From Klebsormidium nitens (lineage: Eukaryota; Plantae; Klebsormidiophyceae): a DNA stretch of 64,000 nt. Positions 1 to 18,600 of the stretch are shown piece by piece; within the stretch, counting starts at the first letter, position 1, and each line of letters opens with the position of its first letter. The position numbers and the translations under genes are program-made. A model generated the notes under the pieces. It did no database searches, was not told the DNA's origin, and saw nothing but the letters and a program-made list of their open reading frames with translations. Location of the stretch: the NCBI GenBank assembly GCA_000708835.1, contig DF236969.1:1-64000 (forward strand), given 5' to 3'.

Positions 1-1681
1 AAGCAATTGGGGTTTCGAACAGAAAGTAGTGGTCGGTTAGCCCCACATAATACCCCGGGGAGAAGAACCCGGTCAATTCAGCTAGTGTGGTTGACTCTGT
101 AACGCATATTTGCAAGTCGAGTCGTGAACTGTACGGTCAATCCCAGAATCTCGATTCTACTTCCGCCTTGCGCCTCGGTTTGATATGTGCGGCGACCTAT
201 TGCGTGGGTTTTCAATAAAGAGATCGCCCTACGCAGACGTTCCGAGTAGTCATCTTCGACGCCCTCTTCAAATGGCTGCAGATTCAGTTCGATACAACTG
301 ACGTGAGGTACGAAGTTCGAACCGTCACAAGATTCTGTCCCTAAATGCAAAATCGCCTGAGCGCGCGGCATCGAATCCGGCGGTTTCGACGATAAACGCG
401 AATTTATGTAGAAACAGGGCAATATTCTAGTAACATCGATAGCTGAGAAGTTCAGTAAATAGCCTATTACCGTAGAGGAGACTTGGCCGGAGTCAAAACC
501 CGGCCGGAATTCGACCACTGACCCAAGCTAGCCTAGTCTACTAGGCTAGTGACCAGTGGTTCAGCGGCCCATAGTCACCGGATTGTATGTGGCCGGGCCA
601 TGGATGGTACAATCTTATACAATCAGCGCTGCTCTTATAAATGATACATTGGCCGACCAGTTATGTATGTCTTGCAAACTGGCGATCGTATTCAAGGCTG
701 TCAATCGAGATTGTTAAAAACTCGATTGAAGCCGGATAATGAATGTCGGACACTAGCACTTTCATACCATTCTAGAATGTGTTCAGTGACACTGATTTGG
801 CGAGATTGACGAGGCAGTTGAATCGACATGGGCAACGGAAGCAAGCATTGAGCATGGCCAACAACCCACTAGATACATTTTGTGTGAGAGTTCTGAGTCT
901 CTGCAGAGTGGGCTACAAGTTCAAGCATTCACATTACGTATGGTTCTCATGCTTCAAGAACCGTCGACTTTAATCTTTTTGAGTCCTAAATGCACGCAAA
1001 TGATCGTATTTGGGGACTGCCAGATACCGTTAAAAAATTCGCATTGATACTTTTTGACACAGCTCGGTGGCTGGGGGATGATTACACTCATATTTTCAGA
1101 ACCCTGCGTGATGTGGACTTACTCCAAGCTTGCAGCATCATGTTTTCAATGGTGCGCAACTTCTGGTGTGCGCAACTTCCACCAGAAGTTGCACATTCAA
1201 AAAAAAAAACGCATCTGTTGTAAGCAGATTGCATTCCTCGGCAGAGCCTAGAAGTCCGAGACCCAATCTCCAGGCGTGCGCAGCAATGGCCAGTAACGCT
1301 TGCAAAGGGTCACGGTATAGCTAGGTGCGGTGCATTAGCAATCAACTGGACTTTCGATGCTCCGTACTTCTTTGACAAATCATGTTCGATTTAAAACTAG
1401 ACTTGACACAATGATAACATGCGCTGAATACCAATTTGATGAGGAATACGAACCATGAAGCAACTGTGGAAGCTAAGACTCTTTCTCTCTAAGCCGCCTC
1501 CCATATTAAAAGGGCGACCGTATCGGAGAGCGACTTGGGGGGACTCCTTAAAAATAGTGCATCCGCCAATCTCGAGCGCACGACCCAATGTGGCTTCTCA
1601 AGAAGAGTCGGCCACTCGACGGGACTTTCAATACCAGATGTGCTGCATCATGAGCGGAATGACAATTCATCATAGCGAATG

Positions 1682-4600
1682 TTACCTAAGGCTTCGGTCT
1701 TTCTTCTGCGGCTCCAAGTCTTTAGATCGCGTGACAAGGTACACTCGTCCGTACGCCCACTGCTTGCCATCCTTCTTTGACGTCTGCAACCAGAATGGAA
1801 CCTATCAGAACAGCTGCTGCTGCTAGCGAAAACTGCAGTGAACGAGCAAAAAGCAGTGCTTTTACCTTCCTTCAAGAAAAGAAACATATCTCAGACTCAA
1901 GACCCACGCCATCAATTCTGTCCTACATCAGAGCGGGTTGAGCAATCAGATACAGCTGAAGAAGAGCAAAGAACAGCGAAGACGGCCCTCGCACTGACAA
2001 CTTGAAGAGAGTGGCGGTCGGGCCCGAAAACCTTTGAAGAGCTCAATCACTTCTTTAAGAAGGCGCATGCAATTCCGACACGACGCACGGGTTTGTTCAA
2101 CAAAGAAACCCTGGAAGACGTAACTGCGACAATCTGAAAATTCTGACCGGTAATTGAATCGAAATAATCAAACGAAGTCGAACCTACCTCAACAGTTGCG
2201 TGGAAAACGAGCGGGTGCTCGCATACGTGGCATTCGCTTTTGTGCCGCGGCTTGTGTTCCTTGGCGTCTAGGAACGCATACACCTCTTCCCCGCAGTTTG
2301 GGCAGCAACCTTTAAGGGCGACCACCTCCCCACGCAGTAGCGACTTGACTTGTTGCACTGCAAATACGCGGAGCCAAGTGTAAGGCGGCGTGAAAAGGAA
2401 GTTTACTGCATCGAGACTCTGAAAGCCCAATTTATTGCACTTTCGAAGCATTGCGAGCTCTCGGAAATCCCCACTGGAGGCTTGCAATCCCGCGCTGCTG
2501 CTCCTGAGATCCGTCGCCCTTTTGGATCTCAAGAGCAGGTGAACCAGCGGCAAGTCTTCTTCGGTAACACCGAAGTGAAAGAACGGAACGGGAAACTTAG
2601 AAGTATGCAGCGGAGGTTGGGCAACCAGCAAGAGGACAGAGAAGCCAGTTTGCAAATATGAGCAGAGGTTGTGCAAGAAATCGAGATCGATACGCACCCG
2701 CTGCGGACGCCAGAGGGACCCCCCCTAGCAAGCCCAGGGCGAGCAGGAAGTTTGCGAGGGGGCTACTCTGAGCGGCCCACCACGGCTCCAGGGCCTCGTT
2801 CACCAGCCGGTCGCACACACTCGTGGCAGTGCAAAGAGGGGGGACGACTGCGGCAAACGCTCCAGCAAGGCCCAGGGCGCCCCAGACGGCCATAAGCGTT
2901 GACATCTGGGAAGTGTCTTCCTGCAAGGGCGTTCGTATAAAACCCGTTGGCGAAAGTTAGCAAAGGTCGTAGACCCTTCGTCAGCAAAGCCAGAGGTAAT
3001 CTTTTTTGCAGGTGTTTTAAAATTCCGTAGAACCAGGGATCAATCATACGATTTTGCGAGGAGTTGAACGTGATGCTTGGATACATATTACAGATGACGT
3101 TCTATGGAGAGGCAACTGCGACCTGAGCTAGAAAGGAAACACCAAAGCTCGACTCTCGCAAGTTCGGGTCCATCTCCCAACCGTTTGACATACCAAGGCA
3201 CCGATCCGTACAATCAGGTATGCTGTCAACCATGATCCTTCCTGCCTAATCAGCCTGCCAGCTTAGCGACGCAGTGAGCCGGATGTGCAATCCAAAGACT
3301 CGAAATAAAGAGATTAACAAAACGACCCATATTAGTGGATTCAGCGAAAGACTCCTTGATCTTGGGTGCTTGACAATTACAGAGGGGTGGCAGGAAGGGA
3401 CTGCGTGACAGAACTTCACCAGTAGGCGCTGAGGCTGAAGACCCAGACTGATATCTGGTGACCAGAAAGAGTTCTAGAGCCTGACATTCGTGTCACGCTT
3501 TATGCACCGTACTGCAACTTCCATCAGACCTGATTCCTTGCTTATATTCATTCGTTCACTCAACGTAAGGCACGCCTCAACAGACGTGCACATAAGAACA
3601 ACCAATGTAAAAACAGAATTGAGTACCTCTGCATCGGAGTACGCGGCAAACTTTTTGAGGCTGCAGCGGGGATACTTGAGCACCATCTTGGAGCGCAAGT
3701 TGCGCAACCGAGTCTCCACCTTGTCAAACATTTCGTCCAGTATCAGGGGCCGCCCGCTGTAGTATGAGTCACGTGCCTGCAAAAGGTTTCAGAAGAAAGC
3801 TCAAAACCCTCACTTGTTTTTCGGCTCATTCTTCTGCAGTTGGGCTTGGCTTCTCCTTGGAATGTGTCCTGTTTAGGATCGACGCTTTGAGAACCAAATC
3901 AGACGTACTACACGAATCTCGTTTGGATGCATCCACCATGAACGTCGGAACAAACCAAGGGCTGCTATTATACGTAGCCTAGGATTTCCATAATATGTCA
4001 GGCCATGATGAGCAGTGAGCACGGAGTCTGCTGAAGCATCAACGGCAAGGGCCTTATCAGCAGATGCCTTTGGAATGAGTAACAAGAAAAGCCTTTGGAA
4101 TGAGTAACAAGAAAAGTGCGGTCAGGTGCCTATGAAAGTCGTTCCCACACAAATTGCTTAAAGTTGGTGAATCATTGGCCTGTGGGGTGTTGCCTGGTAT
4201 CTCCACCAAGAAGGAAGTGACTAGCAAAAATGCAAATCCTCCTCTCTGAGTCGTCCCACCCGCATCCAGTGAACCATTTCCGTAGCAAGGCAGCAAAATT
4301 GAATGCACAAACGATGAACATTCTTTTCCTGAAACAGTCTTGCCTGTGCTACACATATAAGTTGCCAAAAACGGCAGCCGCTGACCCTGGAGCTCAGAAG
4401 TCCTAGGCACCTCTTTATTCCTTCTCCATGTTACCCGGCAACTTTCACACTTCCAGCCCTCACAAAACAACACCTTGTGCAACGTAGTTGACCACAAGAG
4501 CTTCATTTAAGAAGTCGCGACAGGGTGTTTAACGATGACTCGCAACACGCTGAGTGTCTGAGCATCCAAATTGCGACTCAGTGTTCACCTAGTGAACAGT

Positions 4601-6272
4601 AACAACTCTTCCCTTGGAAAGAAGGTCCTGCCTCGCAAATCTGCGGTCGACTTCAGAAACTTTGACATTTTGCTTGACCCTCATGCGATGGCGCTTGTAA
4701 CAACATGGTGATGTCAAAGTGCGTCGAATCAGTGTCAAAGCAAACAACAACTATCAGCATTGAACGGAGGCTGGATAACGCTACTAGCTTCAAATAGAAC
4801 AGCCAAGCAAGGCTTAATTCAGCAACAATGTCCTGACAAGGACTTGAAACAAAACCACATTACTAGGGGCAACCCTTACTGTAGACGGTGAGGCCAAACG
4901 TCGCAAGAGACATACGTCTGAGGAAGTCAACCAGAAAGTGCAGGTCAAAAAGTCAGCAATTTTCTGTGGTTGTCAAAGTGGAGGAGGATCGATTTCGCCA
5001 CAAAGCTCACGAACCCGGTCAGAGCTTCCCAGCACGACTTACCTGCATATACAGCGCCTCAAGATGCACTCTGTCTGCCTCCTCAATGGGCCCAATGAAC
5101 AGGCACGACAGCGGCTCGCTGACATCACCTTCGCCACCTTCATTCAAGTTGCCTCGTTCAACGGCTTGCCAGCTGACACCCCCGGCGTCGAGACTCATGG
5201 CTGCTAATAGAACTCTACGCATTCTGTGGTTTTGTCTCCTGCTAATATTCCTGCTTCTAGTTGTAGAAACAAGACTGCTTCCACCTTGCAACATCCTGAT
5301 CCTTTCAGATGGGAGGTGGTCCTTTAAGATACGGCTTCTATGCAAGAATAGCTCTGATTCTGGAGGTCGTACTTCAGAGGAGTGATGGCCCGAGGTGCTG
5401 GGACCAAAACTTGACTCTATGCGACTCGTTCTTGCATGGTCTTGCCATGCTGACGTACTGCTTCTCCGAGCTCGATCAACAACATCAAAGTCTGGAGCAC
5501 CGGAAGGTACTTTCAGGAAGGAGCCACGGACCTCTAAGCCTTGCTTTTCACTTCCTAACCCCCTTGAAGTTGTCAAAGCGACAGCACTTTGTCTTGAGGA
5601 CTTGGCCGCCACCTCGTGCAATGCCATGAGATCAGAAATTGGAACCAAATGTGGCCTCTCTATATTCCCCTTTGAAGGTCACGTGCAGAAGCGAAATGGT
5701 GATCTTTCTTCGAGAATGGACAAGAATCCTCTAAGCTTAGATAAGCAAGCTAAACTGCCATATAAATGTTGAAAACCTTGTCAAACCGCCTCAGACACAC
5801 AGCGACAGGCCTAAGAAAAGCAGCTGACGAAGTGAACTTATTCAGCACCTAGAGATTACAACTGCCTTGAAGACGAAGAGAAAGGGACTTCGGGAGGCAC
5901 AAGAGGCAATCAGAGAAGCACCATCCCTCTGCCTGATCTGGTCAGCAAGTGAAGGGGCGCCATAGGAAATCTGAACGAAGATCTGGAGATTCTGCAGCGA
6001 AGCAGCGACTTAACCCAGGCGGTCAAATAGAGACCGCATAAGTTAACCTTAACCCAAATCTGGGCGGAGGCTCACCGTCCGATCCTACTTCGAGGTTTAC
6101 GAGCATGGCACGTCGACAGACGTCTAGAAGGTTGCCACGTCAGCCGCGGCTCCGGTCTTGCTAGCCAGTCATCGGTTAGAGTATCTCCAGGTTCTTCGGG
6201 AGGAGATCTTGGTGCGCTCGCAAGCAGGCCACGTAGAAGCAGAGCAAGCCAACGGTTCTTGGTCGCGGCCAT
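1682..6272 (-). CDS. PGRL2: PGRL1-family thylakoid protein, PGRL2 (At5g59400)-type; multi-exon, 5' end uncertain (ATG at 6272 or 5627)
   Basis: Exons (minus): 6272-6076 (uncertain), ~5627-5043, 3776-3627, 2920-2698, 2357-2188, 1783-1682, with GT-AG boundaries in frame. Spliced peptide contains SCLFIGPIEEADRVHLEALYMQ|ARDSYYSGRPLILDEMFDKVE...KYPRCSL, a TM region, ALKGCCPNCGEEVYAF...HKSECHVCEHPLVF and KQWAYGRVYLVTR. These match the At5g59400-type signature as I recall it rather than PGRL1A/B. Confidence 0.8.
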
Positions 6273-6623
6273 GATGGCTTCCTTGCTTTCTCTGAGTGCT
6301 TCACGACCACCCACCTTGCAAGGTCGAACAATACTGTTGAATACATAGAGAGAAAGCCAGTTGCGCTTTTGTGAAGAGAGATCAGTTCAGAAGCTACGTG
6401 ACCACAACACACTTTCGACTCTCAGGTTCTGACTCACTTTTACCGACTCTGAAATCCGACAACAGAAAGACAAGCCTAGTATCTTATTGCGCTGCTAGAT
6501 CCCAGAAACCTGCAAGCACACTGCGCCTGACACTGGGAAGCGACCCGCGCCTTGTCTTCTTGCTCTGCCCTTCTGTCTTCATTTAGCCTGAAGAGATCTA
6601 TCGGTCTTGGTTTAGATCTGTAA

Positions 6624-7678
6624 ATGGCTTCGAGCGCTGCTTCTACGTCTGGCCGGTGCCTCTTTGGGGTGCAGGCATCCATGGGAAACTCAGGCCGGAT
6701 GGACTCAAACACGCAGGCCTCGTGCAGTCCTCGCCCTGCACTTCTACGGCAGACGCAGGCGGTTTCAGGAGCATGGGAGAGCTCCTTCAGGGGGAATGGT
6801 GTCAGCAGCATGAGCCCTGTGGTGCAAAGCCGCAGTGGTAACAAGAGAGAGATCACAATGGGAAACAAGAACGAAGGGAAGGGTATTTTTGCTCCCATCG
6901 TAAAGGTGACCAGGAATGTTGTGGGTGTGAAGGAATTCAACCAGTTGAGGGGGAAGGGCATTGCGCTGCACTCACAGGTGAGGCTCACAGTAAAGTTGTC
7001 AAGACTGGTTGTGACTGCGGAAGTGAGACCTTAGTTTGAGATCTGGGCACGGGTTAGATCCAGACCCAGTGGCATCTGCTGTTCCACCAAATGACTTGAC
7101 GGTATTTGCTTTTTGGATACAAAGCTGCTTCACATTGGTTCGAAACAGCATCAGAAGTGGTAAGAGTGAAGTAACACCCAGGCAGGGAAGCATAGGACAG
7201 GCTTCCCTGACGACATATGAACATCAAAATCAAGCTTTGCTTTTCAGCTCTTGGGCATCGCTCTTGCAATGCATTGCAAAGGACAGGCAGTCTCATTGCC
7301 AATTTGAAGTAGAGTTGCACAGCCCAGAGCTTAGAGCATACCACTCAATTGAAGTGGGTGCAAGGAACAGAGTTTCAGCTCCGAGTAGGTTAGTGACTGT
7401 ATGGTTCAACACAAACTTAGCTTGTGATATCTACGGATGAACCTTGCGGATAAACCTCATTATCAGAAACTTCAGCTTTCACTGTGTCGGTTTGTTCTCA
7501 AATACACCGTGTGTTTCATCGGGTTGTATCCAGCTTGCAGCAAACTGAAGATGTTTTGTTTCGCCCTGTGCAGGTCATCACTGAGTTCTGCAAAACCATT
7601 GGTGCGGATGCGAAGCAACGGCAAGGGCTTATCAGATTAGCCAAGAAGAATGGGGAGAAGCTCGGATTCTTGGCATAA
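6624..7678 (+). CDS. PGR5: Proton gradient regulation 5, chloroplast precursor; 2 exons (6624-6977, 7574-7678)
   Basis: Transit-peptide-like N-terminus, then MGNKNEGKGIFAPIVKVTRNVVGVKEFNQLRGKGIALHSQ|VITEFCKTIGADAKQRQGLIRLAKKNGEKLGFLA*; intron CAG|GTGAGG...TGCAG|GTC. Confidence 0.97.
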
Positions 7679-8336
7679 CCTTTTAGCATCTGCCCTGGCA
7701 GTGCGCTGCCATCACTGAAAAATACTGTAACTTCTTGAAAGTTTGCTCCAGGAGCATGACAGGTTGCATCCATCCTGTTATTAATCATATGTGATATTGA
7801 TCAAGGCACATTGCCCAAAACATTGAAACATGCAGCATAACTTAGCCAGCAGGTAGTGTGTAAGCATGTCTGGACTCAAAGGTGTAAACACGCATTTTGT
7901 AAGCCTTGGTAGAAAGGTCCTGTTCATGGAGTGTAGACAGAAGCACTCTGCGTCAGACTCTTGACAGAAGCACTTCAGGTGAATCTCTTGTTTCCGCAAG
8001 GCTGTGTCACATTTCTATCTGATTCATGAAGCAACATCACAGTTTATGTGTGTGTGCCATGAGAAGCTTTTTGGCCATCACAACATGAAAATATTGGGCG
8101 TTGAGCCACAAAGCTGCTTGTTTTTGACTGGCCACTGTTTTAACGTTATTAGCTTTGCCTCTGTCTGGCCCTCTCTATTCTAACATGTCCATAGTCACCA
8201 CTCTGTAAGTCACCATTCCAATTCTGTGCTTCTTAACGCGCCTCCAGCTGTACTGTAGTGATGAGATGCCTTTCTGTTCACAAGGTGACCATGCAAACCG
8301 TCCAAGCAAGCTCTAATTTGCACCAACTCGTGCAAT

Positions 8337-8393
8337 GTTTCATTCAAACAGTTAACTGTTTGAATGAAACAGGAATCTGAATTCAGATTCCTG
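8337..8393. repeat. Two abutting perfect palindromes (34 bp and 24 bp)
   Basis: 8337-8370 GTTTCATTCAAACAGTT|AACTGTTTGAATGAAAC and 8370-8393 CAGGAATCTGAA|TTCAGATTCCTG; they share one base. Confidence 0.95.
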
Positions 8394-9298
8394 ACTTCCA
8401 GGCGTGAATACTTTTTTGAGAATTAGTTGCGATCATGACCATCATCATGCATACCATGGCATATAAGTTTTAGATGCAGAACTCGAGTCACATGCAAACA
8501 GGTGTATCGACATCTAGCTCCGTGCAGAGCGCGTGCGTCCATATACAGTCCAACCGCATGAGCCGCCATGTGGTGACGCCGGGTCCAAATTCGAGCGCCG
8601 TGTGCTACATGCCTCATCATGATCCTTGCAATATGCAGGGGCATGCAGTAGAATTGGAGCTGTGATGCGACAACATTGTATACGTACAACTTGGTTTTCA
8701 TGATGGCGTACCTACTAGCATGCCAGTAGCTCATAGTGCAAAAAGCGCAGCACACTTGCTCCCTTTACATTTACACATAATGCAGATCGGAAGTAAATAG
8801 GTAATTGAAAAATGCTTAACTGCAGCTATCCGCATGTTGCAGCATACCTTGAAGTGTGCACTTGCCATGCCAGCTTATCAGACTTGGGCGTTTGTTTTGC
8901 GGGATAAAGGTTAAGAATGAAGCACCGTGGCAGGAAGCTTCGGGTTCGAAGTCAGCGAAGACGCAATTTTCAATCTGCACTGGAAAGTTGGGACACCGTG
9001 GCCTCATCCACAGAATGCCTCCGGTACAATGAGCTACGAAAACTAGCGTTCGATCATCCTCGGGATCGTGTTTCGACCCCCAACTCAGAGGGGTTTGGGC
9101 ATAAATCCTACCCCTCCATAGATCATTTTATAGATTAGTGTGTCTGCTTTTACACTGGTGTTACGAAGGACTGCAACGGACCCCTGTTACTTCAACAGTC
9201 TCCGCACATCTGTTCGTTGTCAACCTCTTTTTGATACAAGACACTTTACAAACGCTCTCATACACAAGCAATGCAGAAAACCCACTCCACACAAGACC

Positions 9299-12200
9299 CT
9301 ATGACACCCCCCCGACATCCTCCATCTCCTCCTCTTTTGGCTGGTCCGGCCTTGATCTCGATGCCCCCAGAACCCCCTGCAACACAAACGGGGGGGGCGC
9401 CCAGGGTATTACCGCCTTACTATTGGGGTCGTCGTCTGAGTCTTCCTCCATCTCAGTCGCGGTCGACTCCCCCCCCGAAAAGTTGAAGAAAAGCGACCGG
9501 GGGAGGGAGGAGCACGAGTTGTTGCGGACGAGCCGCCGGGGGATGTCAAGTGCTGCCGAAGCCTCAGCGCCGCCACGGCCTTTCAAGTCCAGAGCTGCAA
9601 AGGTGTGGCAGTGCGTTTAGCAATCATGACGTATTCAAAGAGTTCGCTCATTATTGCTGATTTAACGTGGTGCACTTGGTTTTGGGAGACTGTTTGCAAC
9701 CGCGAACGGATCTTAAGCGACACTGCCGCCACACAGCTGTCGAAGGAACTTGCAAATGATCCGGCTCCTGAGGAACGGCTCCTAGCTCACGGCGTCGACA
9801 TTCATTCAGGTCTGACAGAGGCCCCCGTTCACAGCCTATTCAATATGCAAATGACCACCTGTCTCGCAGTAAATCAACGAAACGCGAGACGTTGGTGCCC
9901 GACCGGAGTACTGGAACGTGGTGACAACTCGGGGTTGGAATAGTGGATCAGCTCGAGCGTTGGAAGATCTAACTGCTCCCTTTTTTCGATATATGGAGAG
10001 CTACGGTATGTGGACAGCGATGATGATAGAAAGGCGCAGTGCACAAGCGGTTGTACTTGAAACAACTTCGCGGAAGATGAAGACTGCGCAGATCCCGAGG
10101 TTGACGATCAGAAGCGTATTGTTGTGGAAAAACAAGACGGAAGCAAGGCGAAATAAGGCGGAGCCAAGACGGAAGCAAGACGAAATAAGGCGGAGCCAGG
10201 ACGGAAGCAAGGCGGCCACAGAAAATCGCATCCCCTTTCCGAGCAGCACCGACGGACTCCGACACACGCGCTAGCCCAAACGAGGAACCTTGGTGGAACA
10301 GTAATCAAGTGATCGGGGGCAAACGACATTATTCCCAGGCTCCTCACCCCCCCGTTTGCAACCTCTAATACCAGGTTCAATGTCGTTCCTCGTTCTCCAT
10401 CTGTTCGTGAACTTCGAAGGCGTATGTACATGGCTAAACTATGATATTGCAATCTATATGGGTGGATTGCTCTGCTTTCTGCAGGTGTGCATCTCAACCA
10501 GAATCGCAGTGCAAGTAAATGAGTAGCCAATTTGCCACAATTGTAACATAGCACTCCAGTTCCCTCACATAGAATTGACGATATCAATGGCAATCAAAAT
10601 CAACATTCTCAAACCAACAACGTCACAACCGATCTTCAGCGTGTCAAAAGACCGGCGCACGGGATTCGACGCATAAGGCTCACCTTGCATCAGATCAGAA
10701 TTGCCCCCAAAAGGAGCAGCAGGAGGTTGGAAGACCGTCGAACCTGGAAAGATGTTTCCAGTTGGATACGGTATGATGGCATTTTGTGTCCCCCGCGGGG
10801 GGCTGCCGTCAGGGGAGCTGGAGGATGGGAGTTGCACCATGAACGGGCGTTGCTGCAGAAAAAGAAAATTGGTGTTAATCCAGGGGTAGTGGTGCTAATA
10901 CTTCACAGGATTCGCTTGTTACGGTCTGAAAGCGGGGAGCCACACAGAAGCGCCAGAGACCGAGCCAAAAGTCTGAGGAGGAGCTAACTGAAGAGGGGCA
11001 TGTCGGCCTTTGCTGCATATAATACAGAGTCCATGGAAGCAGTCTATCAGTATGCCCAAATTCAGGCAGACTCTTGAAAACGCTTCCAACCAGCCTTTCG
11101 CAGATGAATCATTTACTTATTGACACCGAACAGGACCAACAGCGACAGAAAGTTTAGGGTGGTACTCGGAATATGCGGAATGTTATCCAACACAGGCCGT
11201 CAGGAGAAACGACAGATTTGCAGATAGCGAATCCCGTGACCAAAAAGATCAACTAGATGTCGTTTGCAACTCTTGCGAGACCAGCAGAGTGAAGTGATGT
11301 AGCCAGACAGGAAGCTCTTTAGCCAGGTTCAAAAATGTTTCGAGCAATTCTGAGACGATCTGAACCATCCAAAGTTATCTTTAAAAAACGTATACGAAAG
11401 GACATGCTCTACTCCTGGAAGTACGGGGCAGCCTGTACCTGCACGTCGTCTCCTGACTGTCCTGGATCTACTTCGATCTCCAGCGCCGCCCCATCGAATC
11501 CCTGTTGGGGCAGGCTGGAACCTATCAACGTGGGGGCAGTCGACACATCTACAGCCTGCAAGGTAGAAACAGGGCAAGCAGGTAAGGGCGGTGTCAAAGA
11601 AAGGGGGATTTCATTACACATCAACGTCGGCATTGATAACTCATCAACGCTGCAGGTTGGACACAGCGCTGTGCGGCATGTGGAGAGCCCTGTTTTGATT
11701 GCCACTAGACATGGCATATTCATTGGAAACACAACGAGAAAGTCTACGAAGTGGGTTGCTGATCTGACAGTCTGGGGAAATCCAAATGGGGGTTCCAGTG
11801 GCATCCTGCGATGGACAGGCCAACAGACCAGCAATGAAACATCTTCAGGCTTTAAGTTCACTGTGTTCATCATGGTTCTTGCCTGCTTGTAGCCTGACAA
11901 CTGAGAAGCTCTGGATGAACTCCTGTGAATGCCCTCTAACCAGACGAGGGGGCTAGGGCAAGCCGTTCCAATGTTCCTGTCAGATTGTTTGTCTGTTTCG
12001 GCATCTTTCAAAGACTCGAATCATTGCAAGAAATGTCAGAAATAGGTCATGATTAGAGTTATGACAACGAGCGAAGCCGTGCTTCTGAATGTGGTAATAG
12101 ATCACGCGGACGCTCCCACGTATTCCCTGACAAGAACCTGAGCTTGGCTCCCCAACCCTTAAACCTGCTGTAGCCAAAGAGACTCATCGTCGCAAAACCA

Positions 12201-12811
12201 CAAACCAGCCACTTGTTGGGGGACTTGTAATGCCGTTTCCAGTCATCTCTCCCGTCTCCGAATCACTTCGCTGCCTTATCAATGCCCTACCTGCATTCCC
12301 CTCTCCAGACGATTTCTATGACCTGTGGGCGTTGCCCTATCTTTTATGAATGTCAGGATTCCAAGCTTTTCAACGAGACATTTTGAACCACATGTTTGAA
12401 AGTGCAGCCGGTCAATATATCTGCATCCATCCTTTCCAGCAATGCTGTAGACATCCACCATAAAACACTTGATCTCAACACGTTTACCCTCTAAAAAGAC
12501 GCTTCCAGGGAGAACCTGATAAGGGCATGCGCCAGAATCAAAGCAAAAACCCCTAAACTTGGCACATCTTTCAAATGTAGATCCCAAAGCGACATCTGAC
12601 AGTCAGCAACAGTCAGCCTTACCTCCCCTGTCCGGCGCTTCTTCAATGAGTTGGGCGACAGTACGAAGCCATTCAGCCGCTCCACAACCTCATTTGCATC
12701 CGGCTCTAGTTTCCGCTTTGCATCCGGTCTCGTTTGCGGCTCCCCAGGGGGCCAGGCAAATAACGCAGGCCCAGTCTGGGGCAGCTGGATGTGTTGCTGA
12801 TAGGTGTCCAT
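9299..12811 (-). CDS. Plant protein of unknown function, AT5G35320-like family (often mislabelled DBH-like monooxygenase)
   Basis: Exons 12811-12623, 11882-11439, 10852-10684, 9594-9299 splice in frame with GT-AG ends; a possible extra cassette exon lies at 12515-12291. Motifs AKRKLEPDANEVVERLNGFVLSPNSLKKRR, QNAIIPYP, NSKAVIPWAP and the acidic EEEMED tail resemble the family motifs KRK..DDFSDFSLSSPARKIRR, ERAIVLFKP and CxAVVPWxP (from memory). Confidence 0.6.
10134..10214. repeat. 32-bp tandem repeat, 2.5 copies, intronic
   Basis: AAGACGGAAGCAAGGCGAAATAAGGCGGAGCC at 10134 and 10166 (1 mismatch), partial copy at 10198. Confidence 0.9.
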
Positions 12812-13594
12812 TCTAGTTATGGAGTTTTTTTTTGTCTGACCAACTCTGGTTTCAGGGGTCACTCTGGATAAAGAGCCTGGTCGAGCTTAGAATCTTCTCC
12901 GCTACGGCAGATAACCAACAAAAGGTCATGCCCCCCCCTTTGCGGATGCAGTTTTAAACCTATCCTTAGAACCACCTTGTGACAAGCCCTTGAGAGATGT
13001 CGTATTGCGATGTGACGTCAAAGGGAATGAGCTGAAATGCTGCTATTCAAAAAGACAGGAAACTTGCTGCTGCTGGTACAGATTCGCGAATGTAACTAGA
13101 TTCACGAGGCCGATATTTTTCAATGTGCGATTCCTAAAGGAGACGCTGTCAGATTTTCTTGCAAGATGACGGCAACTAAAAGCAAACCCGCTCAAAAAGA
13201 TTTTTCCAACAGGAGAGCCAGCTCTCTTGAGTTACATTCTACAGCTGCATGCCTGGATATCCTGGGAGGTTTGGCAGAGTTCCTCCGACATCAAAAAGCA
13301 AGCACTCTTCTTTGACAATGCTACGACCTGCAGAACCAAGTTCCTTTCGATAAGGAAGGTGGGTCTTGCCGCCCTTCCCTCCAGACGTGGTCCCCTTTCT
13401 GTTGAAGCTCCACAGAGCTTTCCTGTACATCGTCTGTAGGAATTCCTAGGGTGCAAGACTCAAGCAATGATTTGGGGCAAACAAACTGTGCACATGAAAC
13501 ATGCTTTGATAAAGGCTCCTCCTCTCCTCTGAAGCCCCTGACCTGCCCTGACCCTACCATCGGGTTCCAGATGCTCCGATTGCATGGCTCCTAA

Positions 13595-14057
13595 TAGCCT
13601 ATTCAGACCAAAATCGGGGTCTCGGTGTCCAGAACGGGGTTTTGGTGACGTTTGTCAAATCCGAAAACTGCAGGGTTTCAATAACCCCGCACCCCTATCC
13701 AGACCGCATCGGGTCCCGGGTTCCGGATGTGGGATGTTGTACGTCAGCTTTCCTCACTCATATGTACTGATTTGCGTACACCGCGTGTACAAATTGTGAA
13801 AAGACCGCTCGATCGGCAACTTGCCGCCTTCATCGTTCCCCCCGTGCGTCAGCGAAACCCCTTTTCGCAATCGACATTCTGCCAAAGGGCCAGGGTGCAG
13901 ATTTTTGCAAATTTTGGACATCCGGGATGTGCCCGACGTCAGCAGAGACTCGGTCGGTCTGAATAGCTCAAACCGGATGTCGGATGTCAATTTCGAGACC
14001 CCGGGTGCGCGATTTGCCTGAGAAACCCCACATCCCGATTTTGGTCTGAATAGGCCC
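13595..14057. mobile_element. PIF/Harbinger (Tourist-like) MITE, ~463 bp
   Basis: 22-bp perfect inverted repeat GCCTATTCAGACCAAAATCGGG (13597-13618 / 14034-14055); right end reads GGGCC-type; TAA on both flanks (13592-94, 14058-60); no long ORF. Confidence 0.8.
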
Positions 14058-14066
14058 TAAGTTATA

Positions 14067-14587
14067 GGAGGACTTGTCCCTATTATCGGCCCGGCCCTAT
14101 TACCGGCCCCCCTATGTTGTAAGGTCAGAACTTATACGAAACTTAACCAAATTGAACTGGGTTTTTTGCCAGAGTTTGGCCTTGATGCCTCCTGGCTACA
14201 TACCAACTTTGGTCGCCATCCGCTACTGTTTTAGCCTAGCGCGAGATAGGCTCAAGGGGGGCCGGAACTGGGCCGGAACAGCGACCGAAACCTCCAGCCG
14301 AGTTCCAGTCCGACCGAGTTTCGATCGATCGAGTCTCAATTTAACATCTACTTCGAGGGGGCCGGTAATAGGAACACCGGAATTTTCGACTTCGCCCGCG
14401 CGGAACAACGTAAGACCTTATATCTAGCTTAAAATTGAGAATTTTTGTATCTGAGACCTTTATATGGTTGGAAAGCTCTTTCGACCAGCTTTCTTTTAGT
14501 ACATAACATGCCACACTGAAAACCACACGAACATCAAGTTATGCGTGCCAAAGTACGAAGGGGGCCGATAATAGGGACAAGTCCTCC
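14067..14587. mobile_element. TA-flanked MITE (Tc1/mariner-like target site), ~521 bp
   Basis: 26-bp perfect TIR GGAGGACTTGTCCCTATTATCGGCCC at both ends, flanked by TA (14065-66, 14588-89); non-coding. Confidence 0.8.
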
Positions 14588-14744
14588 TAGCCGTCCGATT
14601 GTCAAAATTGAAAACATCGGACGAATTAAGGGTGTCGGAAATTGGAACGCTCAGGATGTTATATAAGCGCCAAAAAATCTACCATATCCTTATAGGCTAC
14701 CTCGACGCCTGGCGTTTCTAGCGAGTTAGTATTGTTTATGCTGG

Positions 14745-14925
14745 TCAGGCTGATGATAGGCTGGTTAGCATAGCTGGTTAGATTGGTCAGGCTGGCTTGG
14801 TTGGTCGGGCGGGTATAGAATAGTAGGCTGGCTAGGTTGGGTTGGCTTGGATGGTTAAGCTGGCTTGGCTGGTTAAGCGGGCTTGGTTGGGTTTGGATAG
14901 GGTTAGGGTGGTTTGGCTGGGTTGT
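14745..14925 (+). repeat. Degenerate GGYTG/GGTTA pentamer low-complexity tract
   Basis: Repeated ggctg, ggttg, ggtta, gcttg units on one strand; includes gggttagggt. Confidence 0.7.
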
Positions 14926-15686
14926 GCTCCGTAAGTAATATTCGGATATATATGCATATATTCAATTCATTACTGTCAGCGTATTGTGCCAACGTCACTT
15001 TGACGTCATACGGCAGCTTACGGTACCGCCAAGTAGAAACCGTCAGTGAGATCTGACGTCCGACGACTCTCCACCACCCAAAGTACTCTCGATCACTTTC
15101 GCGGCAACACAGTTTTTAGTCGCGACTTCGGCGACGATTCTCGGAGCACAAAAATGGGCAGATACAATTTCAAAGGTCTTGCTCGGAGAAATTGGAACCT
15201 GATGGCAGGTTTGAAGGAAAGCAGCTGTACGGAGCTGCGGAGGTACCAGGTATTCCAGGTATTCCAGGAGGTATTCCAGGTAACGGCTGGCCGCTGCACC
15301 AAAATTCCCAAGCAACTTCGGAGCAGATCCAGTTTCCTTGAAACCGGTTTCTTTGGATGACACGTGTAATGTTTCATTTTGTTGGCCAATCATCGACTCA
15401 AGGGGCTAGAGACACCTTCCTAGCAGCTGCAGCATTCTTCTCAGCATTGCACGCAAGCTCAGCTGACGTCCTCACAGATCCTCGGGCAGGGCGAAGCATC
15501 CTCTAACAGGCTGTAAGACGTCAACGCTAGTATCTATTACACACGCCCCTTCTTTGACCAGGCGTCATGCTTTCTCAGCCCTGAAGCAGCGCACTTGGTA
15601 GGAATTGAGCTGGCAATTGACCAACTCTGCGGCAGCTTTTAGGGCGGTAGACAAAAGGCGTGTGGTGCATCCCTGCCACATTCGAC

Positions 15687-18600
15687 ATGATTAGTCAAGC
15701 TAAGTCGTTGGGAGCTTTTCAATGGTCTGTACCACCTTTAGATCAGAACCTGGGGAAAGCTTCTTCATCCTGTGCACAGCAGAAGGTCCTGCAGGCAGCT
15801 ACACAGCATTCAAGACGTTTGACCAGATATCTATATTACATTGAGAAGCAAACTTTTGTGAGAGCTTCGTCCTCTGAAGGGTCAGCATCACGCCAGCCTG
15901 CTTCCATCGAGTCGACTAAGAAGCAAGGGTGGCGATTGCCGATAAGCATAGATTTCCTGAAAGGTGGACTCATGGAAGAGAAGAAGGGGGACAAGAATCT
16001 TCCGCCAATTGTACAAGCGGGCGACCCCGTACTGCACGAGCCAGCTCAAGGCAAGTCCACAGCTTCTAAGCAGACTCAAAAGACTGAGGCGATCACGTTT
16101 GTTTCATCCTCCACCTGAGGCTAGCATGTGGGTGTTGTAAAACAAAAAAGCATTCTCCTCAGGGATCCATGCAGTTGAATAGAGAACACTAGACTGACCA
16201 GTTTGTCAGATTCCAGCTAATTGGTCCCCCTAACAAAGGCTCTACCCAGTTCCTGTAGTGTAGCTGCTTCCCTACTCTGCCCGTTCGTAGCTACAATCTG
16301 CCCATTTGCAGATACAACCTTAGGAAACCTCCTAGCAGCGCAAGCAACCCAACAACAACATCACACCTGTTTCAGGGAGTGCTTCAGAGTGTCTTTCTTG
16401 ACATCCAACTCATAAGCCTTCTCGTAACATACAGACTTTCACACTAACCAATTTGCCGGGATTGAAGAGGCGCCTGTTTATCCAATCTGAAACCTATGTC
16501 TCTCTGCTGCAGCTGTTGAAAGCTCTGAGATAGGGACGCCAGAACTAGAGCGGATCATTGATCAGATGGTTGACGTCATGAGGGCTGCCCCTGGCGTTGG
16601 CTTGGCAGCGCCTCAAATTGGCATCAACAAGCAGGTCAGCCTGTACTTCACAAGCGCAACTTCCAGAATAGGGAACTCGAGTCCATCTTTCTATGGCAGT
16701 CGTGTACTTATGTTCCTTTCTGAGCCCCCAAGATATTTGGGCGTTGAATTACTTTGAAAATAGTATCAGTGCATCCAGTCTTCTGCGACTCCAGATTGCA
16801 GATTCGAATTCCCTTTGCCCATGTTGCCATAGTACCGACCACACGTATGGGCCTTTAAGAGAAAAGCAGAAGCTGCATGTGGTGATGCGCTTTGCCATTC
16901 TGTTCAACGGTTCACTTGATATCTGAGGGTTTTGTTCCTTCAAGAGACTGACGCAGCGTCATGCCGAGTGACAATCTCTTCACTAGGAAGTATGTAGTAT
17001 CAACAGCCAAGCAGCTCCTTTGGATGCGCGCATCTCGACACAACATTAAGGACTGGCCCAGCTTGGAAGATGCAGCCCTTGTTATGCTCCTCTTCCGCTC
17101 TTCAACCGCAAAGTTCTCTCCTCAACCGTAGGCTATAACGCTTGTGAAATTCTGCATCTCTGGACGTCTGAATTAGCGGGTTCTCTTACTTTTGCAGATT
17201 ATCGTTCTTGATGACGGGCCCTAGTATGCGTCTCTGAATACGAACCTCAGTGAATCCTCTTCGTATTGCAGATCATCGTCCTTGAAGACAAGCCTGAGTA
17301 TATGACAAGAGTGGATCGGGATGAACTGCAAGACCAGGAGCGAGAACCGTTTGATCTACTTGTGAGTTCGCCAGAAAGCTCAATTGGGAGAGTGTGAAAC
17401 AGGAAAATCAATTTTGAGTTTGGTCGCTTCATCCTGAAATAAGGTGCCCGACTGCGGTCAGTGAAAGCCACAGGCTCCTTAAACGGGTCTACCAAGAGAG
17501 GGGCAAAAATCTTGTAGCAGCGATGGATTATACTCGGCCCGTTTGAGACGGAGATGAAACCCTTAACCTGATTTACTCCAGAGAATTCTCATCTCCATGA
17601 AGGGTTGCCAGTGCTCAGCTCTTTTCGAAATTTGCACAATTGCGTCATCGTCGTCAAGACAATTTGGAGCAAAGAGATGAAAAAGCCTATAAAGCACTAC
17701 GGCTTCCCGGATAAAGAAATTGTGCTTACCAGGTCAAAGACTACCTTTTTACGTCGCCGTTTGTCTACGAGCAGGTTGTGATAAACCCCAAACTGAGCAA
17801 GAAGGGCCGCCGCACGGCCATATTCCTCGAGGGTTGCCTCAGGTGTGTCTCCCGAACCGCCGAACTTTTGACTCGTCTGCGCTGCAATTCTGGGGAGATC
17901 TCTTTGCAAAGACGTCTTGCCAAGGGGAGGTATCTAGCCGAACAAAGTACGCTGGCCAAAGTTCAGCTGGCAGAAAAATCAACGGTGAAGAGAGTGATAT
18001 GCGGTTGGAGATGAGAAAAGCTGAACAATCTGTGGCGTTGGGTTGTCATTCAACCATTTCGAACTGTCGGAATCTTCGATTCAGCGAGCCTGTTCGAGGC
18101 AAAGGGCTGGCACAGTCAGTCTCGTTCCTTGCTTGGCACGAATCCGCTCGTTTGGAAGGGCTGTCATAACATACCACTTTGGGACGATCAAAACCGCGAT
18201 AATATATCAGGCTTGTGCATTGAAAGAGAGCTCGGGGTTTGTCAGCAAGAGCACGCCAAGCCCTGTAGCATAAGCCGCGAGTGTTGACGCATGGTGAATT
18301 CTGTACTCGATCTTCATTTTGGTGCCCAGTTGGAAGTTGTGCGGTGGAAGTATATCGCAAGTTCTTGAAGAGCAATTCGATTCCCGCAAGATGCAGAGCG
18401 GTAGCAGCGACTCCCTACTTTTTGACTTGATTGTCGTCAACCCCGTGTTCACTTGGAAGTACTCGAAACCAATTGTCCAGTGACACTGACGTCTATGCGT
18501 TGACGTTACCTTCTCTTCAAAGCGAACGCCAGTTCTGAAGCCGACGACTGACGTACTCTTTCCTCCTGACAACCTGTCTGTTTCTTAAGGAGGTTAAACG

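Follow-up and report, generated by a model that had tools for sequence, protein, structure and literature searches.

At the beginning of scaffold DF236969.1 of Klebsormidium nitens, the gene for PGR5 forms a divergent, head-to-head pair with a gene for PGRL2. PGR5 is a small thylakoid protein on which photosynthetic control and antimycin-A-sensitive cyclic electron flow depend. The pair spans positions 1682–7678 exactly, with PGRL2 on the minus strand and PGR5 on the plus strand. Positions are those of the window, the 64,000-nucleotide stretch of DNA that was analyzed, to which NCBI GCA_000708835.1 DF236969.1 1–17678 (L001) is identical. The head-to-head placement of PGR5 and a PGRL2-type gene, proposed from a sequence-only reading of this DNA, is confirmed by the mapping of both exon sets within this interval (Table 1), and no annotated genes, tRNAs, or Rfam hits lie between the two. 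The arrangement is conserved across species, being found in K. nitens, in the Klebsormidium-like metagenome contigs L002 and L003, and in the GC-rich sequences L033 and L036. With slightly better than even confidence, the two genes are regarded as orthologues of PGR5 and PGRL2 in a conserved divergent pair whose linkage is old and has been kept by a shared regulatory region. No paper reporting PGR5–PGRL2 linkage was found in the literature, nor one connecting Klebsormidium with PGRL2.

Table 1. Coordinates of the PGR5–PGRL2 pair and of the spacer elements in the window
Feature	Position	Strand	Remarks
PGRL2 exon 5	1682-1783	-	stop codon 1682-1684; encodes TSKKDGKQWAYGRVYLVTR...; tblastn with P0025 and AG acceptor
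PGRL2 exon 4	2188-2357	-	zinc-ribbon part CPNC...CHVC; phase 1 at its start
PGRL2 exon 3	2698-2920	-	holds both predicted membrane helices; tblastn with P0025
PGRL2 exon 2	3627-3776	-	encodes ARDSYYSGRPLILDEMFDKVE...KYPRCSL...; tblastn of P0025 against the window
PGRL2 exon 1	5043-5627	-	annotated start 5294; likelier start, the conserved upstream in-frame ATG 5627
Shared spacer between both start codons	5628-6623		996 bp
Small conserved non-coding block	5841-5872		at least 63–70% three-way identity in 30-bp windows
Main conserved non-coding block	6128-6258		three-genome alignments and sliding identity
ACGT-core element GCCACGTCA	6134-6142		within the main conserved block
ACGT-core element CCACGTAGA	6229-6237		within the main conserved block
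PGR5 exon 1	6624-6977	+	conserved start 6624; NCBI model start 6681
PGR5 exon 2, stop codon included	7574-7678	+	encodes VITEFCKTIGADAKQRQGLIRLAKKNGEKLGFLA; 97% identity to L002 and L003

Gene structures and the assignment to PGRL2

PGR5 (kfl00020_0020) comprises two exons separated by a GT-AG intron, and its product matches, at 100%, the K. nitens entry that NCBI names proton gradient regulation 5. Identity to Physcomitrium PGR5 is 88% in the exon 1 core and 83% in exon 2, and the conserved core of the family, GKGIFAP..V.R......FNQLRGK.IALHSQVI.EFCK.IGAD.KQ.QGLIRLAKKNGE.LGFLA., is present. The intron follows ...LHSQ, a position common to the window, L004, L006, L033, and, in a read-through alignment, L019. 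Pfam holds no dedicated model for PGR5 or PGRL. The N terminus of PGR5 (MASS...TSGRCL) is kept in L002 and L003, as is the ATG at 6624; neither contig has an ATG codon aligned to the annotated start at 6681.

The minus-strand gene, KFL_000200010 (kfl00020_0010; protein P0025), is annotated as “hypothetical” and has five exons between 1682 and 5627, with all introns of the GT-AG type. In K. nitens as well as in L002 and L003, its reading frame is open from ATG 5627 to the exon 1 donor, with conservation at the protein level and in-frame indels, and the annotated methionine (5294) is not conserved, lying in an Arg/Gly context in L002 and L003. ATG 5627 is probably the true start, adding 111 residues for a predicted length of 409 rather than 298 residues, and the NCBI models of both PGR5 and PGRL2 are probably truncated at the N terminus. 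The exons and the N-terminal extension (5043–5627, minus strand) were compared as continuous stretches, and whole-protein comparisons were based on the models P0025 and P0001 from the database. The N terminus of PGRL2 is rich in Ser, Arg, and Ala, a composition consistent with a transit peptide.

P0025 contains two hydrophobic segments, residues 140–170 and 186–212 (Kyte-Doolittle), and the PGRL2 proteins of Beta and rice are laid out alike. Its zinc ribbon matches PF14255 (Cys_rich_CPXG) at 30 bits (cut-off 25.2), the sole Pfam model above threshold and a generic one. Cysteines C122, C227, C230, C251, and C254 are invariant in both the PGRL1 and PGRL2 families, and C64 (EPLSC) lines up with a cysteine, termed A′, in an (E)GPSC context that only PGRL2-type rows show. 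The protein has cysteines A′ and B through F. The KYPRCSL motif of exon 2 is invariant among the PGRL2 proteins compared.

In a phylogeny of 46 PGRL proteins (IQ-TREE, LG+G4; repeated later with L033 and L036 placed), P0025 falls in the PGRL2-type clade with support of 100/100, and the named PGRL1 proteins lie on the other side of a long branch. The clade also holds P0330, which is EEC78386, listed as OsPGRL2 in PMC8225790 Supplementary Table 1, and its branching order is roughly that of the species tree. This phylogeny, which the sequence-only reading had called for, upholds its assignment of the gene to the PGRL2 type. That the gene might instead encode the PGRL1 of the alga, pairing PGR5 with its canonical stabilizer, is highly improbable. 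Many members of the clade of P0025 carry the label “PGR5-like protein 1A/1B” in NCBI and UniProt, and the CxxC...CxxC ribbon and two helices are common to both families, but the 100/100 split places P0025 beside OsPGRL2 and “PGR5-like A protein” entries, the protein has the PGRL2-only motifs CGEEVYAF and W.YGRVYL and is without the EEFDxLKEEL repeat found at the N terminus of PGRL1, and a separate K. nitens PGRL1, kfl00342_0140, has been reported (PMC9121098). PGRL1 identity for KFL_000200010 is rejected by the phylogeny. Judged by tree position and motifs, the minus-strand gene is a true PGRL2 orthologue, and KFL_000200010 can be named accordingly.

The spacer between the two start codons

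With the supported starts at 5627 and 6624, the start-to-start spacer is 996 bp; on the NCBI models the distance is 1386 bp. The gap of 351 bp first proposed for this pair proved wrong, as it requires an ATG at 6273 that is unconserved in L002 and L003 and lies outside the annotated model, and the alternative given with it, a start at 5627 and a gap of about 1 kb, holds up, with the ATG and frame kept in three genomes. ATG 6273 is also rejected as the PGRL2 start by a 13-nucleotide, frame-breaking indel between genomes in this region.

Two blocks within the spacer are conserved well above the spacer background in the three genomes, as seen by sliding identity. The main block, which the 13-nucleotide indel between genomes marks as non-coding, contains two ACGT-core elements and the footprints AGCCAGTC, TATCTCC, and AGCCAAC, and is a candidate promoter or enhancer common to both genes. 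Across the whole window, CCACGT shows no enrichment (25 sites versus 25.5 expected), and therefore only conservation counts. The small block is possibly the 5′UTR or promoter of PGRL2. A search of the 996-bp spacer against Rfam gave no match. PGR5 and PGRL2 may share a promoter; co-regulation of the two genes from a bidirectional promoter, which the sequence-only reading had proposed, is so far unsupported.

Recurrence and loss of the pair among green lineages

In both L002 and L003, all five PGRL2 exons lie on the minus strand, upstream of a plus-strand PGR5. The pair is also found in L033 (GC 0.70), where the ATG of PGR5 (8458, minus) and the ATG of PGRL2 (8663, plus) are 204 bp apart, and in L036 (GC 0.68), where the two ATGs (383, minus; 552, plus) are 168 bp apart. 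Given such proximity of the start codons, the transcription start sites in L033 and L036 would also have to be close. In the PGRL2 tree, the proteins of L033 and L036 join the chlorophyte branch (support 96/93). The carriers of the pair amount to only two independent lineages, one made up of the three Klebsormidium-type genomes and the other of L033 and L036.

The sequence-only reading had considered chance adjacency unlikely, and this view is supported by retention of the pair in two Klebsormidium-like genomes and, independently, in the GC-rich alga that falls on the chlorophyte side. The computed probability that two named genes are adjacent by chance in a genome of ~16,000 genes is ~1e-4, and that of a repeat adjacency in at least one of ~6 other lineages is ~7e-4; the same arrangement in a distantly related green alga thus makes it unlikely that the pairing is due to chance. 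Another explanation is that the two genes are chance neighbors kept by inertia, devoid of functional meaning and shared by close relatives for lack of time, with the 1-kb spacer holding two ordinary, independent promoters. L003 is indeed collinear with K. nitens through the next gene as well, the genes of K. nitens in this region alternate densely between strands, such that head-to-head neighbors are common, and PGR5 and PGRL2 appear to differ in their response to high light. This explanation is nevertheless disfavored and judged very unlikely, since the pair recurs with unchanged orientation in a phylogenetically distant second lineage, the collinearity of L002 with K. nitens breaks directly after PGR5 and the pair is still kept, and the spacer blocks stand out from their background.

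The pair is absent from other lineages. The sequence-only reading had raised the possibility of a linkage ancestral in streptophytes, to be checked by microsynteny; in bryophytes that check was negative, the pair being absent from Physcomitrium, Riccia sorocarpa, and other moss-like contigs within up to 10 kb of flank. No linked pair was found in any land plant checked; in Arabidopsis, the AGI codes place PGR5 (At2g05620) and PGRL2 (At5g59400) on chromosomes 2 and 5. The pair is likewise absent from Mamiellales-like contigs (up to 10 kb of flank), one of which, L019, carries PGR5 and PGRL2 6 kb apart in convergent orientation. L005, a Physcomitrium cDNA-like contig, has no PGRL match, and the contigs of P0225 and P0008 begin at the gene start, are uninformative on upstream neighbors, and were left out. 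The neighborhood comparison covered the Klebsormidium-type, GC-rich, Mamiellales-like, and bryophyte sequences, with Arabidopsis added from its gene codes; the PGRL2 proteins of Chlorokybus, Mesostigma, Mesotaenium, and Spirogloea are EukProt entries without contigs.

This distribution bears on whether the pair was inherited from the green-plant ancestor or arose separately in Klebsormidiophyceae and in the chlorophyte-side lineage of L033 and L036, with selection placing PGR5 beside its controller. Separate origins are rather unlikely. They would account for the lack of the pair in most lineages tested, for the five-fold difference in spacer length (996–1673 bp in Klebsormidium-type genomes versus 168 bp in L036 and 204 bp in L033), for the lack of a convincing common motif when the Klebsormidium spacer is aligned with those of L033 and L036, and for the nearby but convergent genes of L019. 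However, both lineages show equal orientation and immediate adjacency, two specific rearrangements would be needed to build the pair twice, and an ancient adjacency is commonly and easily lost by rearrangement.

Proposed regulation and comparison with known systems

In Arabidopsis, PGRL2 is a paralogue of PGRL1 that prompts the breakdown of PGR5 when PGRL1 does not hold it, and free PGR5 is harmful and is removed by PGRL2 (PMC8225790, Rühle et al. 2021). In K. nitens, PGR5 rises five-fold in high light, from 126 to 629 FPKM (PMC9121098, Serrano-Pérez et al. 2022), and kfl00020_0010 is missing from both lists, activated and repressed, in Table S1 of that study, lists that are thresholded (fold-change of at least 2, q < 0.05) and cover one condition only.

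Under the favored reading of an old linkage, the pair would most simply predate the chlorophyte/streptophyte split, would have been broken later in Mamiellales-like algae and land plants, and would be retained elsewhere because both genes draw on one shared regulatory region. That region would tie the basal dose of free PGR5, which is potentially harmful, to that of its removal factor, and extra elements on the PGR5 side could add light induction, allowing PGR5 to rise in high light without its antagonist. In its strongest form, which is put forward tentatively, the common ancestor of green plants (~a billion years ago) would have had a head-to-head PGR5–PGRL2 module in which one shared promoter coupled regulator dose to removal-factor dose, a module kept in Klebsormidium and at least one chlorophyte lineage and broken in land plants. 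Such a module would be among the oldest conserved bidirectional pairs in photosynthesis regulation.

A single study, in Arabidopsis, underlies the view of PGRL2 as the disposer of unprotected PGR5. That precisely these genes are neighbors, with one and the same orientation, in two green-algal lineages far apart offers independent evidence that the PGR5–PGRL2 relationship is old and general, and an ancestral module, if real, would make this independent genomic evidence that it is ancient and general. The PGR5:PGRL2 ratio determines the state of PGR5 (active, harmful, or degraded), and the short spacers (168 and 204 bp, and ~1 kb with a 130-bp block in Klebsormidium) are testable as promoters that would set this ratio.

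As in the Arabidopsis system (PMC8225790), K. nitens has the three protein families PGR5, PGRL1 (as reported in PMC9121098), and PGRL2, with At2g05620 and At5g59400 as the orthologues of the paired genes. PGRL2 proteins are described there with two transmembrane domains and with five cysteines out of the six conserved in PGRL1, plus the PGRL2-specific A′; K. nitens PGRL2 similarly shows two membrane helices and the cysteine set A′ and B–F. Unlike the Arabidopsis genes, which are on different chromosomes, those of K. nitens are immediate head-to-head neighbors, and the algal PGRL2, whose function is putative, probably carries a long N-terminal extension. The K. nitens high-light study (PMC9121098) covers PGR5 (kfl00020_0020) and makes no mention of kfl00020_0010 or PGRL2. 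Bidirectional pairs are defined by co-expression and by transcription start sites less than ~1 kb apart; PGR5/PGRL2 is described here by its gene arrangement, and the high-light responses of its members appear to differ. In its divergent orientation, short spacer, related products, and conservation across species, the pair nonetheless resembles the bidirectional gene pairs of eukaryotes, such as those surveyed in PMC1487180.

Gene models and the intergenic spacer

The window covers the initial 64 kb of Klebsormidium nitens scaffold DF236969.1 (GCA_000708835.1), and its positions 1–17678 are identical to the locus retrieved for the annotated PGR5 protein. In the NCBI annotation, the interval comprises a minus-strand gene for a "hypothetical protein KFL_000200010" of 298 residues (1682–5294) and a plus-strand gene for "protein proton gradient regulation 5" (6681–7678). 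Both genes of the divergent pair that a sequence-only reading had described in 1682–7678 are present, PGRL2 (minus) and PGR5 (plus). The core of K. nitens PGR5 shares 88% (exon 1) and 83% (exon 2) identity with Physcomitrium PGR5.

Exon coordinates of the PGR5–PGRL2 pair in the window
Feature	Position	Strand	Remark
PGR5 exon 1	6624/6681-6977	+	conserved ATG / annotated ATG
PGR5 exon 2	7574-7678	+	preceded by phase-0 GT-AG intron, after ...ALHSQ
PGRL2 exon 1	5043-5294/5627	-	annotated start / conserved start; GT-AG read in sequence
PGRL2 exon 2	3627-3776	-	GT-AG read in sequence
PGRL2 exon 3	2698-2920	-	GT-AG read in sequence
PGRL2 exon 4	2188-2357	-	GT-AG read in sequence
PGRL2 exon 5	1682-1783	-	GT-AG read in sequence

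Start codons were judged by aligning 5200–6700 with the matching region of L002 and L003, two pair-carrying, Klebsormidium-like contigs from JGI metagenome 3300060284. On the PGR5 side, the ATG at 6624 and the downstream MASS..TSGRCL are kept in both relatives, and the annotated ATG at 6681 is replaced by GGG/GTA. On the PGRL2 side, ATGGCATTGCA at 5627 is invariant, and in all three genomes the frame from this position runs open, through in-frame indels, to the exon-1 donor. The N-terminal extension, examined as a single continuous ORF with exons not joined, contains patches conserved among the three, such as SRIE.S.GPSTSG, and the two related genomes do not keep the annotated Met at 5294. The start at 5627, originally proposed as an alternative, is therefore supported. 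The 351-bp spacing proposed alongside it depends on an ATG at 6273 that is ruled out as a start by its non-conservation and by a 13-nt indel within its ORF. Both NCBI models look N-terminally truncated, over 5294–5627 (PGRL2) and 6624–6680 (PGR5), with the longer starts adding 111 and 19 residues, respectively. From 5627, PGRL2 is predicted to be probably 409 residues long, comparable to its counterparts in Sphagnum (408 residues) and Calypogeia (399). PGRL2 intron 1 contains two tandem copies of a ~25-bp unit, cctttggaatgagtaacaagaaaag (4070–4117).

Because the conserved starts lie at 5627 and 6624 and the ATG at 6273 is not conserved, the best-supported spacer spans 5628–6623 (996 bp), in which no Rfam RNA or annotated gene is found. 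Two blocks are conserved above background divergence among K. nitens, L002, and L003: 5841–5872 and, more strongly, 6128–6258. In the latter, two ACGT-core elements (GCCACGTCA and CCACGTAGA) are conserved, in addition to AGCCAGTC, TATCTCC, and AGCCAAC. The ACGT-core elements are candidate bZIP/G-box-type light elements. The frequency of CCACGT across the window is not above chance expectation, so conservation alone counts as evidence for them.

Identity of the minus-strand gene

Phylogeny and alignment identify KFL_000200010 as PGRL2. An exhaustive HMMER search with its annotated protein, P0025, returned 172 relatives. Strong full-length matches include proteins of Chlorokybus, Mesostigma, Sphagnum, ferns, and angiosperms, and proteins named PGRL1A at source (Nymphaea, Adiantum, and Galdieria) score only 1e-9 to 1e-6. 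A maximum-likelihood tree built from 46 proteins splits a PGRL2 group from a PGRL1 group at 100/100 support, and P0025 falls in the former, as the PGRL2-type label given to the gene had anticipated. Its position, between Chlorokybus and the Zygnematophyceae plus land plants, agrees with species-tree expectation. The PGRL2 group also includes "PGR5-like A protein" entries and the rice protein EEC78386, which is OsPGRL2 in Supplementary Table 1 of Rühle et al. (PMC8225790). K. nitens PGRL1 has been assigned to a different scaffold, as kfl00342_0140 (PMC9121098).

In the alignment, P0025 shows the PGRL2 hallmarks: absence of the N-terminal EEFDxLKEEL repeat and presence of KYPRCSL, CGEEVYAF, CHVCE, and W.YGRVYL. 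It has cysteines B–F and the PGRL2-only cysteine (EPLSC), and its hydropathy profile indicates two helices, as in the family description of PGRL2 (PMC8225790). Pfam contains no dedicated PGR5 or PGRL model, and the sole match above threshold is the generic PF14255, at the C-terminal CxxC...CxxC ribbon of the minus-strand gene. For the PGRL1A proteins of Nymphaea and Adiantum, the EEFDxLK repeat gives weak, sub-threshold matches to Nlig-Ia (PF22745), a domain found at the N-terminus of NAD-dependent DNA ligases; PGRL2 proteins give no such matches.

Distribution and origin of the linkage

L002 and L003 repeat the arrangement of K. nitens, with the same five PGRL2 exons (minus strand) and PGR5 in plus orientation; PGR5 is ~70% and the PGRL2 exons are 66–91% identical to those of K. 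nitens. The spacers measure 1092 and 1673 bp, respectively. That of L003 contains a ~600-bp insertion, absent from K. nitens and L002, with a tRNA-Gly(ACC)-like sequence (9311–9405, minus strand) that is either a tRNA gene or a tRNA-derived repeat. The next gene beyond PGR5 is collinear between L003 and K. nitens. In L002, similarity to both ends beyond 11372, just past the PGR5 3' end; this site is a rearrangement breakpoint that spares the pair.

When an alignment of streptophyte-algal PGRL2 proteins was used to scan JGI metagenomes, it yielded two GC-rich contigs, from Ga0049083 and Ga0136642, in which PGR5 and PGRL2 are immediate head-to-head neighbors. In L033 (11.9 kb, 70% GC), the PGR5 ATG is at 8458 (minus) and the PGRL2 ATG at 8663 (plus), leaving a spacer of 204 bp, and PGR5 has an intron after ...LHSQ. 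In L036 (3.3 kb, 68% GC), the ATGs are at 383 and 552, with a spacer of 168 bp. Their coding DNA differs by 20–30% and their spacers do not align; they represent different species of a single lineage. Their PGRL2 pieces, entered as one continuous C-terminal exon each with exons not joined, fall on a chlorophyte branch (96/93) with Mamiellales-like sequences, apart from streptophytes.

For ~16,000 genes, the probability that two named genes adjoin by chance is ~1.3e-4, that of a second adjacency among ~6 further lineages is ~7e-4, and that of at least two among seven lineages is ~3e-7. Even if the first case was chosen for its apparent interest, the second, L033/L036, was a test specified beforehand. 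Given these low probabilities and that prior specification, the PGR5–PGRL2 linkage is not random, in line with the earlier view that chance adjacency was unlikely.

Microsynteny, which had been suggested as a check, is conserved in part: the pair is present in L002, L003, L033, and L036 and is not found in the bryophytes Physcomitrium, Riccia, and Calypogeia. In Physcomitrium and Riccia sorocarpa, no PGRL2 match lies closer than 10 kb to PGR5. Each Riccia species has PGR5 and PGRL2 on one chromosome, ~800 locus tags apart and not as neighbors (R1sor_007153 and R1sor_006344 on CM100796.1 of R. sorocarpa; R1flu_005699 and R1flu_006514 on a 60-Mb chromosome of R. fluitans). They are on separate contigs in Calypogeia and are At2g05620 (PGR5) and At5g59400 (PGRL2) in Arabidopsis. 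No PGR5 was seen on moss-like metagenome contigs L012, L031, L034, and L038–L046, within 10 kb on each side of PGRL2 in the Mamiellales-like contigs L007–L011 (L011 being shorter), or in the 0.8 to 10 kb PGRL2 flanks of L021 and L025–L029, likewise Mamiellales-like. In the Mamiellales-like contig L019, PGR5 and PGRL2 are convergent and 6 kb apart, with three genes between them, one bHLH-like and two for flavodoxin. This marine contig carries PGRL2 (+), bHLH-like (−), two flavodoxin (+), and PGR5 (−) genes within 7.5 kb (210–7529), which could constitute a small cluster for electron flow around photosystem I; a second sample (L020) confirms the first 3.5 kb only. The many lineages that do not have the pair, and the unrelated spacers of the Klebsormidium-type and L033/L036 contigs, leave room for a convergent origin of the linkage, but identical orientation and strict adjacency in both lineages favor inheritance of the pair.

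Expression and proposed working of the pair

PGR5 and its known controller form a conserved divergent pair with a short spacer that contains conserved non-coding blocks. Co-regulation was assessed in the high-light RNA-seq tables of PMC9121098, which represent one condition. PGR5 (kfl00020_0020) rises five-fold, from 126 to 629 FPKM, and PGRL2 (kfl00020_0010) is absent from both the activated and the repressed sheets of the complete file; therefore, the pair does not appear to be symmetrically light-induced. Of the co-expression that had been suggested, the PGR5 response is observed and simple co-induction is without support. In the same tables, kfl00020_0040 (peptide deformylase, window 15687 onward) rises seven-fold, from 15 to 107 FPKM.

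The spacer may act as a shared regulatory region, as the proposed bidirectional promoter would, tying the basal output of PGR5 and PGRL2, with signal-specific elements tilting transcription toward PGR5 under high light. The linkage might persist because, once the genes were split, the dose of free and potentially harmful PGR5 would no longer be tied to its removal factor. No paper connecting PGRL2 with Klebsormidium, synteny, or bidirectional promoters in this sense was found in a literature search of incomplete journal coverage. The PGR5/PGRL families and their interplay are already known; new is the name PGRL2 for the formerly unnamed KFL_000200010. In Arabidopsis, PGRL2 is reported to antagonize PGR5, and excess PGRL2 to destabilize PGR5 (PMC8225790), an antagonism that the apparently asymmetric light response of the K. 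nitens pair fits.
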